Of a DNA stretch of 64,000 bases, positions 1-5,120 are shown piece by piece. Each line of letters starts with the position of its first letter. Within the stretch, counting starts at the first letter, position 1. The stretch is from Amoebophrya sp. A120 (lineage: Eukaryota; Protista; Dinoflagellata). The stretch spans positions 186,001-250,000 of the forward strand of contig CAJINV010000020.1 of assembly GCA_905178155.1 (NCBI GenBank), read 5' to 3'. Below the pieces are notes generated by a model. The model worked only from the letters and a program-made list of their open reading frames with translations. It did not search any database and was not told the origin of the DNA. Both the position numbers and the translations under genes were made by a program.

Positions 1-94
1 GGAAAATGCTTCTCATGGGGCTCCGCATGAGAAACAATTTCAGCATGCAGATTTGCAATACAACTATGGCGTGGGGACGTTTTTACATAGGATA
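1..94. mobile_element. Introner family E, partial (window edge); intron of the LRR gene
   Basis: 1-94 is the reverse-complement homologue of the left part of the element at 30772-31056 (…CTCCGCATGAGAAAC…GGGGACGTTTTTACATAGGATA). The LRR exon stops exactly at its end. Confidence 0.8.
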
Positions 95-95
95 T

Positions 96-1312
96 TTCGA
101 ACTCGAGCAGCATGTCGCACTCCAGCACGCGCAACTGCGGGAGTTGCTGAAGGTACGGCGCGATGTCCTGTGCAAAAGAGGTGATATTGACGCAGCGGTC
201 CACGCTCAGGTGAAATAACCGCGGAAAAGCCTGTTCTTGCGACCCCTCCTGCACCGCCAGAAAATCCAACGTCGTCAAGGGATTGGCAGAAAGGTCAAGA
301 ACCTGGTGCGCGTCGTGCGGGGTAGGAAAATAAGAATAACGTACGGAAGATGATGTCGAAACTACTTGGATATTGATTTTTTCTTTTTGTAGCAACATTC
401 TATTATTTCCCGCTCGCGTAGTCTTTCTAGTGGAAGTTATGCTTCCGTCGTAGGATTCCAACTTGCCAGTGCTTTACTTGGAGCAAGAAGCTGTACCAAC
501 CCGAAACAAAGAGAACAAGATACACAACCCTATCCTGTCATTACCACGAGATTTTCTGCCGCCTCTTCCCAAGCTCGCGGCGGCGCCACTTCCCGTAGAT
601 GGCAGTTGGTGATGGCCAGAGCACGGAGCTTCGGGCACTTTTTCTTCAGTACGCCCCATTCTGCGAGCGAGTCGTTATGATGGTATGGCACGAGGAATTG
701 TTGTACCCTATTTCGGCATGATCTACTTCTTCTGTACTCTGATTTAGCTGTTTAAATAAACCAAACGATCGTCCTGGTAATTCAGTGCTAAATCCCTGTG
801 GTAAGCACCAAATCCAAATGCAGAATGAGTTGTTGCGGACGACACTGATTTTATGCAACCGAGCCAGGTCTTCGTGGTCTTTCGCGGGCAGCAGATTTTC
901 CCCGTATCCGTACAAACCGTTTCCCCCGCAAATCGACGCTCTCCACGTCCGCAAGCACCGGTGTGTCAGTTCCTTGCTCGAGGCGCAGCAAAGCATGCTC
1001 GCTAAAGAAATACTCGTCAAGAAGCTCGGACAGGGCCCTGGGAAGTTGCTGCTGTAGCATCTTCTCCGGCTGCGCTTCCGGTGCATATGCAGTCCCAGGA
1101 TGAACAGGACGCTGCTGCGCGGCAGTAGTTGCGGCCCGAAGATGTAGATGTTGAACAACCGGATTGTTCATCGGTATTGGCACACCCCTAATATGTTGCG
1201 GCGGCTGCATGTAAGAAGTCCCGGGCGCGAAAGGAGGACGGTGCCCGCTGCTAGAAGATGCCGATGCCTTCCCAAACGGAAATCCACCAGAAACCGCGTT
1301 CTCGCCTCCCAT
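96..1312 (-). CDS. Leucine-rich-repeat protein, multi-exon, 3' end beyond window
   Basis: Minus-strand 96-303 reads VLDLSANPLTTLDFL…LFHLSVDRCVNI…LQQLPQLRVLECD (LRR pattern) behind a CAG acceptor. ORF 851-1312 has VESVDLRGKRF. Internal exons unresolved; apparent 1-nt frameshift near 905. Confidence 0.55.
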
Positions 1313-2335
1313 CTTGATGGTGAGTCATTTAACTCGCCACGGTATGAAACGCCTTGGGCCTGTAAGTGTGAAATCAAAATATATCCAACGAGAAAATACG
1401 AACAAATAATGCTCCAAAAAGCTGAGGGTGAATATACAACGCTATAGTCAGTTTCTCCATTAGCTGCGGTACGTGTGCTAATGAGGTCCTTGGCTTGATC
1501 TACGTTTCACCTGACGGGCAGGTTGTCCGATACGAAACAGAAAAGGCAATATGCGATCCTGATTGACAGTTTTTTTCTTTTACCAGTATGAATTCTGAGC
1601 AGGGCTGCACCTGTCACAAACAATGACCAAAGCGACAGACCTCGCCGGGAGGGTGCGTTGAATTGCAGGCGATTGGAAATGTTGGTGATCCACACACTAC
1701 TATCTAAATATTGCATTAGTGCTTCGACTTTTTTGCTTTCCAACAATACTAGCAGAATATAGGTGGACTCAGGGTCCACGTGGGACAAACAGCAACTGAA
1801 ACTCCACACACGGAGATGGAGGCTCTCTCTTCACATAAAGAAAAGTAATTCCAAAGCCCCCGTTCTGCTGAATGGATGCAAATAGGCCGCGCCAAGAAAA
1901 GGCTTGACTTTCTTCGATGTACTTTTCGAGATACGCAAACGTGACAGGCCCCACGTCAACGATGGGAACCGGAACGAACGCTCGATTACAAGGACGACCC
2001 GTGTCTGTGTTGCATCTGCCGCGCAGCGAGTTCTGCAGTGCAATGACTACAGTGACGAACATGATAATGAAAGCGAGTACTTTTCCATGTCTTCTAGCAG
2101 CGTGCTGACTGACGAGTCGCACGCCTTACTGTTTTGCATGCCGATGTGTCAGGACATCAAGGGGCTCCAAGTCGAAGTTTTGCATTCGAGCACCCTTTTT
2201 TTTTCGTTCGAATAGGCACAACATCATGGACCACCTCCAGCGTTCTTCTTCACCTGGCAAGAGCAACGCCTGCAATTTCCAAACCGTTCTATGACTGTGA
2301 TCGTCATCGTTTACATTTCAATAGGGACCACGAGA

Positions 2336-2420
2336 AGGAAGCAATAAATCAGACGAGCAAGGCGATTTCGGTGTTAAAAATGAATCCGTCAGCTCTGCAC
2401 GTCGTCACAATAATATCCTG
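2336..2420 (-). promoter_or_regulatory. Candidate SECIS-like stem-loop in glutaredoxin 3' UTR
   Basis: Minus strand GTGAC-GACGTGCAGAG…CTTGCTCGTC-TGAT: UGAN/NGAN core closing a helix of about 11 bp, outer AGGA/TCCT pairing. Apical AA not in the canonical position. Confidence 0.4.
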
Positions 2421-2721
2421 TTGAAAGTATGTTTGTATGATAACGTCCCGTCTACTGCCGATAGAAGAAGTTATTTTTTCATTTTGTACACGGTGCCGGC
2501 GGCGGCTATTCAGACAAGTTGCTGGTGCCCAACGGATACGTACAGGGCAACAACTGCATTGTGTGTACCTTAAGTACGTTCACTCCAGGTTGATGTATCA
2601 AACCCAGTTGGAGGATGCCGTCGAAGAAGACCGTGCCATAAACGGCCAAACAACGGCTCTTGGTTGATCCTGTGTGGGTTCAAGTAGTCTCTGAACAGGC
2701 TAAGTACTTACTTCCTTTCTT

Positions 2722-3885
2722 CTACTCGCGCAAAATCCGTAGCGTCTCGCTCGAGTCCTCGGTGGCGGACAGTGCCTTTTGGATCTTCCCGTTTTATTGA
2801 AGAAAAAAACCTTGCAAGTGTAGCTTTGTGATGCACGACATGGCAAGATCATTGCGTCTATCATGCTGCTCAGGCATTGTAGGGTGTATTCAACCTCATT
2901 TTCGCGTACTATCCGCGTATCGCAGGTTTTTGCGGTTATGCCAGACAGATTTGTAATGCTGTTCCGAGAAGAAAAATGTTACACCTACAATCTTTTTCTC
3001 TTTGATAAGTTTTGCAGCAGGCCTAGTATGCCCATCCAGGGGGCGGCCCCGTCGTTACAGCCGCCAACGCACACACCATTCACGAACGACTGAGGGATGG
3101 TGCGAGACCCATGGATATCGCTGGGAAAGGAACTGAGTACGTGCTGCGCGTAGTATTTTCAATGTCAAACAAATTAAGTGCTGCCTCGCTGCATGCAAAG
3201 TGAGTAAGTCTCTCGTGGGGAAACAAAACACTTCCCTTTCAAGAAGCTGCAGAACATCGTAAACAGAGAAGTGCAATTGCGGCCGCAAATTTGAATTCCA
3301 TGTGGTTTTTCTGCTCTCAAGTACCGGAACAAGAACAACCAGCTGCAGTTGTAAACAGGACACATATAATTATCCTTTATTTCCCCTGCGATATCCGCTA
3401 ATTTCTCGAAGCTCTGCCCGCTCGGCGTCCGTCATATTCTTGTGGTATACGAATTCGACCCCGCAGGTGTTCAGCGCGTCAACAATATGGAAATGAACTT
3501 TTGATGGCACCATGATGTTGACCAACATTGTTTCACTATTTTTCATCGCGATTTTTCCATGGTATTTCAAATTTCATTTCTGTCAGAATGTACATATCTT
3601 GCGGAAGACAGGCGTGTTTTCATGCACAGACTTTCTCTCTCTCCTCGCAGCAGCGCAGCCGTGCTGCGATAAACACCAAAAAACTACAGAACGAGATAAG
3701 TAACGAGAAAATAATGCACCGCCACAATATGAATATAGACCGTCGTGGTCGTAACTGCACCTTACAGCGCCAATAAAATGTTCATTTTCATAGCGGGTCC
3801 GCCTCACAAAGGGTCAGTAATCTTCTCCAAAAACCACCACCCGATGCTGCCGCGCGATTTGGCCCAGCCTTTTCGAGGCGGACAT
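2722..3885 (-). CDS. Glutaredoxin with in-frame TGA at the catalytic position (probable selenoprotein, UPFV), 116 aa, 3 non-canonical introns
   Basis: Exons 3885-3794, 3481-3395, 3111-3009, 2790-2722 give MSASKRLGQIARQHRVVVFGEDY[TGA]PFVRRTRDALNTCGVEF…ELREISGGSRTIPQSFVNGVCVGGCNDG…LLQNGKIQKAL: Grx motifs TVPQ-like, GGxD and GKL-like are all present. Confidence 0.8.
2795..3007. mobile_element. Introner (glutaredoxin intron 3)
   Basis: Ends TATTGAAGAAAAAAAAC / TATCAAAGAGAAAAAG (inverted), flanks CGTTT/AGTTT; removal gives LLQN-GKI. Confidence 0.75.
3116..3393. mobile_element. Degenerate introner (glutaredoxin intron 2)
   Basis: TIR TATCGCTGGGAAA / TATCGCAGGGGAA; duplication no longer visible; removal of element + 5 nt gives EISG-GSRTIPQ. 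Confidence 0.75.
3486..3792. mobile_element. Introner (glutaredoxin intron 1)
   Basis: TIR TATGGAAATGAACTTTTGATGGC / TATGAAAATGAACATTTTATTGGC; removal of element + 5 nt gives PFVRRTR-DALN in frame. Confidence 0.75.
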
Positions 3886-5120
3886 CGTGCTTCGGGACCC
3901 GCTGCCCCCAATTTTGCAGTACGAACTAGGGAGAACTAGAGGTGAGTCTAGTACTCGACTGACTGCACAAGGCTGGTGAATACCAGGGATTTCACGATCG
4001 CCGGTGCCATAGTAAGACGAATGGTGCTACAAGTGGGAAGTGAAGACAAGAGTATACTGCAAGGGTACAAGGATGCCAGTGCAACAAGGAAACACTGCTG
4101 AATCACAGAGAAAAAAAACGAGATAATGTACGACAGGTCTCTTCTCGTATTGTCAGGGCAAGGACACGAGATAGTACGAGTACCAGTGAAGTCATTAAGG
4201 GGCTCAATACGGATTCTAAACGGGCGGTACAGGAACTGCGAGGAAAAGTGATCGTGGCATAGAATTCTGCGCGGAAAAATAAGAAAGATGCTTTTCATCT
4301 TCACAGCTGTGCAGCTGACGTACTGTTTCATGATCTTGTCTGAAACTGTTGCCTTTTGTTCTCGTTAACGAAGCGGCCTATAGCGGCCGGAATACAGAGC
4401 GAAAAGAAAAGAAAACAGCATCACCACCAGCAAGGACTTGTTTTGAAAGGCGAACACGTTCAGAAGGGATTTTCCATCAAATAGATTTATGTCGCCTGCT
4501 CATACAATTACATATTTTTTCATTTTTCATGCGTGATATGAGGAGTGTAAGTACATGTGCATTCTTATGCTATTAAAGAAGTATACAGCGATTCACAAAA
4601 AATCTGCGCTACCAACACCCGGGTCGCTTGGCGGAACCGGCACAGGACGATTGTTGTAGTTCGCAGCTTCTATACAATGGAGCAGTTTTTTTTAGTAGAA
4701 CATTTTACTAGTAAATGCAATCTGGCTTGCAGCCTCCGTATTTCTATCTTGAAAAAAGGGTCGTACACGCTGAAACTGAATCGATATTCTGTCTTAAAAA
4801 AGGTAGTATTGTTTTTTGTTCTGAATACAAAGTCGAACTGTTCTCTTAAAAGGTGGTCTTCTTGGAATTTTGATTTATTTTTCCTCAAAAAAAGTATCAA
4901 TCTACAAGTCTGCTTCGTGGAGCGTAATTGCTAACGGTAACCCTGAATGCTGTATTTCTTTCCCTGACAAACAAATTGTGAACTAAATACTTACAAAAAT
5001 GAAAAATCTTTTGCCTTCGGCTTCGCGCTTGACGTTACGCGGTCCTTACTTAAATTGATGAAAACAATAATTCCAAAACGGTCTAGTACTTGAGGTGCCA
5101 AAACTTCACTTCATCGAATT

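Follow-up and report, generated by a model that had tools for sequence, protein, structure and literature searches.

A predicted selenocysteine glutaredoxin gene split by three introners in the parasitic protist Amoebophrya sp. A120

The present analysis concerns a gene on the minus strand of a 64,000-nucleotide stretch of the genome of Amoebophrya sp. A120 (GCA_905178155.1, contig CAJINV010000020.1, positions 186,001 to 250,000), here called the window, to which all coordinates without a locus label refer. This gene is best explained as a functional, single-copy and highly transcribed glutaredoxin of the class I type with a predicted catalytic selenocysteine (Sec, U), whose UGA codon would be recoded by the organism's own machinery, a reading to which we assign a probability of about 0.88. 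The gene has been overlooked by gene finders owing to its in-frame TGA and to three transposon-like introns, the combination of which fragments the coding sequence into the following features.

3886..4093, minus strand: 5' untranslated region (UTR), at least this long according to transcript contigs, with an in-frame TAG ahead of the start codon
3794..3885, minus strand: exon 1, 92 nt, ATG at 3885-3883 followed by MSASKRLGQIARQHRVVVFGEDY-U-PFVRRT, with a split codon at its end
3814..3816, minus strand: in-frame TGA, the proposed selenocysteine codon, aligned with the first Cys of the CPFC/CPYC site in homologues
3482..3793, minus strand: intron 1, 312 nt, a non-canonical introner with a TAT...ATA element and terminal inverted repeats (TIR) matching at 20/30 positions
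3395..3481, minus strand: exon 2, 87 nt, encoding (R)DALNTCGVEFVYHKNMTDAERAELREIS(G)
3112..3394, minus strand: intron 2, 283 nt, a non-canonical introner, TIR 17/30
3009..3111, minus strand: exon 3, 103 nt, encoding GSRTIPQSFVNGVCVGGCNDGAAPWMGILGLLQN, with the cis-Pro 'TIP' and GGC-N-D glutathione-site motifs
2791..3008, minus strand: intron 3, 218 nt, an introner of a repeated family, TIR 22/30
2722..2790, minus strand: coding part of exon 4, 69 nt, encoding GKIQKALSATEDSSETLRILRE, then the TAG stop at 2724-2722
2077..2721, minus strand: 3' UTR, about 645 nt, without splicing in the transcript contig

The exons were delimited by a rule for introner excision, applied by hand and by script, which cuts 1 nt before the start of the TAT and 4 nt after the end of the ATA. 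Their lengths (92 + 87 + 103 + 69) add up to 351 nt, equivalent to 116 codons and a stop, and the frame is kept through all three introns, with the TGA constituting codon 24. Since an in-frame TAG precedes the ATG with no in-frame ATG between the two, the start codon is fixed at 3885. The motifs VVVFGEDY-TGA-PFV and GGCND can be read directly on the minus strand. None of the introns has GT-AG ends, and instead each is bounded by the imperfect terminal inverted repeats listed above, which together with their removal in transcript contigs identifies them as introners. Whereas intron 3 belongs to a family dispersed over many contigs (39 or more further copies in the genome at about 80% identity, scored out of 364 first-look candidates), the exons and UTR are single-copy, and a DNA-level search of the A120 genome has revealed no paralogue of the glutaredoxin gene.

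The predicted splicing pattern is reproduced in contigs of two probable RNA runs, which were mapped onto positions 500-4500 of the window. A contig of 1566 nt and a depth of about 2750 (X4, record 8) contains the joins 2790|3009, 3111|3395 and 3481|3794 exactly as predicted and continues collinear and unspliced from 2790 down to 2077, and the same three junctions are found, again exactly, in two contigs of the other sample (X1, records 2 and 6). The source samples of these spliced contigs are two separate samples of one study, distinct from those containing the full genomic stretch. The original prediction, which had assembled a complete glutaredoxin of 116 amino acids from the intron rule alone, placed a TGA at 3814-3816 in the column of the N-terminal catalytic Cys and proposed a spliced transcript as a check, is thus borne out in its exons, its frame, its three introns and their borders. 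In all three contigs there is not a single differing letter across the region, including the TGA, which demonstrates that the RNA-derived contigs contain the codon and rules out an error of the assembly. The explanation that TGA stands for a misread TGC or TGT, in favour of which we have found nothing, is contradicted by this agreement between separate samples and by independent orthologues described below that carry TGA as well, and we thus give it next to no credence. At its upstream end, one contig departs from the window at 4093 and carries on for another 362 letters located elsewhere, while the contig of the other sample remains collinear to 4118. This departure could reflect an intron in the 5' UTR with an upstream exon or, alternatively, a chimeric contig.

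The identity of the protein as glutaredoxin was established by searches run exon by exon, with the pieces before and after the TGA aligned separately. Exon 2 shows a weak match to the Pfam Glutaredoxin profile at positions 16-48 (E 0.021, below the cut-off), and exon 3 matches Grx2 among the solved structures of the PDB (E 0.0065). The A120 exons taken singly remain under the PF00462 cut-off of 22.9 bits, and it is via truncated orthologues that the family is recognized by this profile, P0002 scoring 29.8 and P0035 27.9 bits between profile positions 14-17 and 60. Homologues with Cys in the active site (P0012 and P0018) match positions 1-60 at 58-61 bits. As reference within the same genome we have used a Cys-containing glutaredoxin (L017, ...KLVVFSKEWCPFCRKAKDTL...) with the active site VVFSKEW-C-PFCRK. 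In the alignment to this protein, the piece upstream of the TGA extends to ...KEW, the downstream piece starts with PFCRK, and the single residue left unaligned is the first Cys of CPFC, which confirms the proposed location of the TGA. Exon 3 contains both elements of the glutathione site, RTIPQ and GGCNDG, and the residues P39, G49, G50, C51, N52, D53 and G54 are invariant in 17 family members. The dithiol motif C-P-[YF]-C is absent from the A120 protein, whose site is U-P-F-V, with TGA (Sec) at position 1 and Val at position 4, and in the orthologues it is U-P-Y-V, likewise devoid of the resolving Cys. The predicted replacement of the resolving Cys by Val and the retention of the Cys in GGCND are therefore both found as claimed, and the site is, as read from sequence, a monothiol-type variant with Sec rather than a dithiol motif. 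Separate genes encoding CGFS glutaredoxins are present in A120 (L014, L015, L016 and L019). Two loci that had appeared as family matches with a TGA inside, L019 and L011, were rejected as intron-interrupted Cys forms.

Evidence for translation beyond the TGA comes from orthologues in other organisms. A phmmer search with the 34 residues of exon 3 against 1.84 billion representatives has yielded 34 matches at E <= 1e-3, which define the subfamily signature 'GGCNDG..PW[MH]G..LL.SGKL'. Its more distant full-length members have a CPYC or CGFC site, and one of their clusters includes a Micromonas 'glutaredoxin family protein'. The closest matches are short open reading frames (ORFs) that start exactly at the fourth position of the active site, such as P0002 (MRKTRDAF...) and P0005 (MQKSRAAL...), which correspond to V-RRTRDAL in A120, and other database ORFs of the subfamily start at an internal Met, a pattern that is expected if gene callers stop at an in-frame TGA. 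Two orthologous loci, both unspliced, were fetched by a profile scan of metagenome contigs, whereas a related-loci search with P0035 alone gave no locus. The first (L060, JACKZZ010012560.1) reads ...NKFVICGEDY-TGA-PYVQKSRAAL... and ends in TAG, and the second (L059, Ga0256417_1041113) reads MSSGGPISEVVKANKFVVCGENF-TGA-PYVRKTIETL... and ends in TAA. In both active-site stretches, GEDY-U-PYV and GENF-U-PYV, the TGA occupies the same column as in A120, in which the more distant homologues have Cys (CPYC). Downstream of this codon, the two loci share 59 of 90 residues (66%), and their nucleotide identity at the three codon positions amounts to 0.68/0.84/0.34, with a nonsynonymous divergence (dN) of 0.27 and a saturated synonymous divergence (dS). 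The conservation of first and second positions next to near-random third positions indicates that the frame is translated and under purifying selection. The A120 pieces are collinear with this frame, exon 1b covering positions 0-6, exon 2 8-34, exon 3 35-69 and exon 4 69-90, with identities of 50/101 to L060 and 50/109 to L059 (46-50%).

These relationships bear on the possibility that the TGA is a true stop, in which case the gene would encode a peptide of only 23 residues followed by the relic of a recently disabled frame, as in an expressed pseudogene. On its own, the open frame of 92 codons would be a weak argument against it, as it is expected by chance in about 1% of cases, and the hairpin proposed below to direct recoding is not unusually stable. 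However, two orthologues in other organisms keep the TGA together with intact frames and a strong conservation of first and second codon positions, the frame in A120 has survived three introner insertions, and the transcript is present at a very high depth, unlike what would be expected for a target of nonsense-mediated decay. We thus consider a true stop to be most improbable, and the earlier argument that an intact frame speaks against a pseudogene is sustained by the selection observed downstream of the TGA.

The preferred reading, a UGA recoded to selenocysteine, requires a machinery for Sec biosynthesis and insertion, which had been named in the prediction as a further check and which is found in the A120 genome. 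The search has detected four genes for tRNA-Sec with the anticodon TCA (64-67 bits compared to a gathering score of 47), SepSecS (131 bits), SelD in a Cys form (GCACK), a PSTK-like gene, and an exon of eEFSec with human eEFSec as its best match among solved structures (2e-44, compared to 1e-18 for EF-Tu). This machinery coexists with at least seven other A120 genes that carry a TGA at a canonical Sec site. These comprise three glutathione peroxidases (GPx) with TGA at NVAS[GIK]-U, SelW (CGG-U-GY), SelM (SCPA-U-RLN), SelU (RRSG-U-KPC) and SelK (RRG-U-G-stop), in which another TGA ends the frame directly after Sec-Gly.

Several details of these loci were noted in passing. The SelM-like gene (L026:1394-2064, plus strand) has an open reading frame of about 248 codons, closed by a TGA, with a signal peptide and SCPA-TGA-RLNALPEV, and within 1.08 kb downstream (to 3144) it shows no candidate for a selenocysteine insertion sequence (SECIS) of the AUGA or GUGA type. 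The N-terminal exon of selenophosphate synthetase (L006, minus strand) has Cys rather than Sec at the catalytic position, and the SelD match is divided among exons that are about 7.5 kb apart on contig C21. Two of the tRNA-Sec genes (L002:459-532 and L003:2567-2639) are each accompanied by a tRNA-Lys(CTT) at a distance of about 1 kb, which suggests a duplicated unit.

Recoding would also depend on a SECIS element in the 3' UTR, for which the genome offers candidates of a distinct type, in which the 5' core is GUGA and the 3' core UGAU.

2337..2420, minus strand: candidate SECIS hairpin of the glutaredoxin gene, GUGA 5' core from 2408, UGAU 3' core to about 2348
L040:2236-2293, plus strand: GUGA/UGAU element of a GPx gene
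L041:2158-2230, plus strand: GUGA/UGAU element of a GPx gene
L042:755-701, minus strand: GUGA/UGAU element of a GPx gene
L012:1262-1218, minus strand: GUGA/UGAU element of SelW
L043:1169-1114, minus strand: GUGA/UGAU element of SelK
L048:1291-1211, minus strand: GUGA/UGAU element of SelU

The candidate in the glutaredoxin gene starts 314 nt past the stop codon. Its helix II pairs at 9 of the first 12 positions (10/13) and a short helix I, AGGA/UCCU, closes the structure. A conserved block with GUGA/UGAU cores and compensatory changes in helix II is common to the 3' UTRs of the GPx paralogues L040 and L041, and the same cores are found in the third GPx gene, L042. A similar GUGA...UGAU candidate in the 3' UTR of SelW was also used as control. 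A descriptor of this architecture (GTGA, a helix II paired at 9/12 positions or more, TGAT, span 36-80 nt) has a single match on both strands of the 64-kb window, at 2408-2349 on the minus strand and thus within the 3' UTR of the glutaredoxin gene. On both strands of the other loci, covering about 263 kb after exclusion of overlapping loci, it has seven matches, including the four source controls, two that were found blind, downstream of SelK and SelU and in sense orientation, and one that is likely false. Shuffling predicts 0.0046 descriptor matches for each UTR, with a score obtained in 28 of 5000 shuffled UTRs (p ~0.005). A covariance model built from two GPx elements, SelK and SelU, with the glutaredoxin candidate left out (R2), ranks the site in the glutaredoxin 3' UTR first in the window, and a model of the two GPx paralogues (R1) found SelK and SelU weakly. 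Since R2 missed GPx L042 and SelW, the evidence from covariance models is weak, and the 3' cores of the control elements were not alignable by MAFFT.

In the search for elements of the textbook AUGA type, scans of the glutaredoxin 3' UTR by hand and by script gave nothing convincing, and Rfam detects no SECIS in the orthologue loci L059 and L060. Since the Rfam model RF00031 has no match genome-wide, including the control loci SelM, SelW and SelO, its negative result on the glutaredoxin 3' UTR is uninformative. For the SECIS expected in the 3' UTR, there is a candidate of the lineage's GUGA type, and as this is not the textbook AUGA type, standard models such as the Rfam model SECIS_1 do not recognize it.

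Further features of the GUGA...UGAU elements in A120 selenoprotein genes are a run of U that mostly follows UGAU and the lack of any detection by SECIS_1. In SelW (L012, minus strand, 1150-1274), two candidates overlap, with the UGAUGA that closes the first providing the GUGA core of the second, which is preferred by model R2. A descriptor match at L043:422-501 on the plus strand is not accompanied by a recognized selenoprotein gene and is either a false positive or an unrecognized element.

A number of observations weigh against the recoding of UGA in the glutaredoxin gene or limit the strength of its support. That the runs containing the spliced contigs are RNA is no more than a guess, albeit one that fits the spliced forms and the presence of about half of the sampled words in these runs, and two raw RNA-seq runs of 2026 (X7 and X8) with zero reads provide no test. 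The search for the Sec machinery covered tRNA-Sec, SepSecS, SelD, eEFSec and PSTK, and a factor of the SBP2 type is assumed. Rfam SECIS_1 finds nothing in the window, either when its entire length is scanned at the gathering threshold or when the intervals 1-4200 and 2050-2730 are scanned by E-value. The stability of the candidate hairpin does not exceed that of shuffled sequences (z = 0.03), it meets the descriptor at the minimum of 9/12 pairs and without the usual AA right after helix II, the thresholds of the descriptor were set after this candidate had already been seen, and the first rank assigned by model R2 corresponds to 16.3 bits at an E-value of 0.7. Finally, the data demonstrate the gene structure, its transcription, the TGA in the RNA-derived contigs, the Sec machinery, the conservation of the TGA and the selection downstream of it, from which the insertion of Sec into the protein, the choice of the SECIS hairpin and the catalytic mechanism are inferred. 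A further point is provided by a related organism, Amoebophrya sp. ex Karlodinium veneficum, where UGA was described to encode Trp in about one fifth of the transcripts (PMC6394959).

This ambiguous code, together with a SECIS evidence in A120 that is statistical and not decisive, would favour an alternative in which a standard amino acid is inserted at the UGA, either Trp or, by near-cognate reading, Cys, or in which the codon is simply read through, with no involvement of selenium. Such general use of UGA as a sense codon is at odds with several properties of the A120 genome. Stop-free ORFs of 1351, 839 and 728 amino acids in the window and open frames of 758 and 889 amino acids in conserved genes contrast with a frequent sense use of stops, the TGA at the end of SelK still terminates its frame, and other in-frame stops encountered in the family searches fell, where checked, in introns. 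The codon resides in the column of the catalytic Cys, where a Trp would inactivate the enzyme, and in-frame TGAs occupy the classical Sec sites in seven genes of selenoprotein families, in a genome that contains a complete Sec pathway. Moreover, the second strain investigated in PMC6394959 showed no such signal for Trp. In light of these features, we regard standard decoding as very unlikely.

With Sec as the favoured decoding of codon 24, the expression of the protein can be envisaged as follows. Three transposon-like introners would be excised from the pre-mRNA at fixed offsets to yield the 116-codon frame, whose UGA would be recoded by tRNA-Sec(UCA), PSTK, SepSecS, SelD and eEFSec together with an assumed factor of the SBP2 type, and this recoding would most likely be directed by the GUGA...UGAU-type hairpin in the 3' UTR. 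Since U-P-F-V provides a selenolate nucleophile and no resolving Cys, the enzyme is expected to act by a monothiol-type (monoselenol) mechanism, in which Sec would attack a glutathionylated substrate or a disulfide to form a Se-SG intermediate, from which Sec would be regenerated by a second glutathione (GSH). From general knowledge of class I glutaredoxins, the conserved Cys at residue 78, in the GGC-N-D loop, may serve as alternative resolving residue. A more far-reaching proposal, which we offer only tentatively and hold to be rather doubtful, is that glutaredoxins with a U-P-[FY]-V site form a distinct, conserved 'monoselenol' subfamily of marine protists, where the loss of the resolving Cys was coupled to the gain of Sec and the Cys of the GGC loop took over as resolving partner, and that the entire selenoproteome of A120 has shifted to GUGA-core SECIS elements devoid of the canonical apical AA. 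If true, this shift would imply a co-evolved SBP2.

Beyond the individual gene, the sequence points to a working selenoproteome in A120 of at least eight genes, encoding three GPx proteins, SelW, SelM, SelK, SelU and the glutaredoxin. Standard tools miss these genes, due to their in-frame TGA and non-canonical introns and due to the GUGA type of their SECIS, and for annotation the study provides a concrete descriptor with which the selenoprotein genes still to be found in syndinean parasites can be sought. To redox biochemistry it contributes a predicted natural Sec-glutaredoxin that lacks a resolving Cys, is conserved in at least three organisms and offers a tractable system to address what Sec buys a glutaredoxin. 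Elsewhere in the window, between 543 and 1443, a second, weakly covered transcript contig (depth of about 19) skips the 234 nt from 680 to 913, a stretch that ends in AT..AC on the plus strand and that constitutes another non-canonical intron, in a neighbouring gene.

The introns of the glutaredoxin gene resemble in all essential aspects the introner elements of Amoebophrya (Farhat et al., 2021, PMC7789003), with which they share terminal inverted repeats and the absence of canonical splice sites, and their three junctions obey the fixed-offset rule; the same account of the A120 genome mentions neither selenoproteins nor glutaredoxin. The candidate SECIS finds its counterpart in the GUGA-type elements documented in green algae and sponge (Chlamydomonas, Ostreococcus and a sponge; PMC3473315), where, likewise, the UGA of the non-Watson-Crick quartet is preceded by G instead of A and where the pattern is organism-wide and not tied to one gene family. 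In contrast to these cases, A120 is an alveolate, and several of its elements show no clear sign of the conserved apical AA.

With respect to its fold, the protein shares the domain order of class I dithiol glutaredoxins (PF00462; human Grx1 and Grx2, the CPFC glutaredoxin L017 and the Micromonas cluster P0012/P0036), consisting of beta1, the active site, a helix, the TVP cis-Pro and the GG(C)xD glutathione-binding motifs, and the stretch 'GGCNDG..PWMG..LL.SGKL' is common to the A120 glutaredoxin and the Cys forms P0012, P0018, P0021 and P0027. It differs from the dithiol enzymes in the first residue of the site, predicted to be Sec instead of Cys, and in the fourth, which is Val instead of Cys, and the Sec forms contain a C-terminal extension ending in ..E..[KR]IL.. 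that is absent in the Cys forms. As in the class I variants with a monothiol mechanism (CPYS/CSYS), there is no resolving residue and a mixed (seleno)disulfide with GSH is predicted, whereas the nucleophile would be selenium, and the protein does not belong to the CGFS Fe-S class.

The closest known counterparts are the Sec-containing GRX proteins among the selenoprotein families of haptophyte algae and algae of the SAR group (stramenopiles, alveolates and Rhizaria), as described in 'The algal selenoproteomes' (Jiang et al., 2020, PMC7539508). The prediction of a Sec-monothiol glutaredoxin has gained support, whereas the protein is no novelty as a Sec-glutaredoxin. Nothing is overturned by our analysis, as the Sec-GRX proteins of SAR algae and the occurrence of Sec in CxxC motifs had been established before. 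Both systems concern a eukaryotic glutaredoxin with UGA-encoded Sec at its redox-active site, which in A120 is predicted, in selenoprotein-rich marine protists of the SAR group, with Cys homologues in most other lineages. The A120 gene differs from its algal counterparts in its origin from a non-photosynthetic parasitic syndinean, and the local twists that stand out are its division by three introners, its GUGA-type SECIS candidate and its conserved U-P-[FY]-V site.

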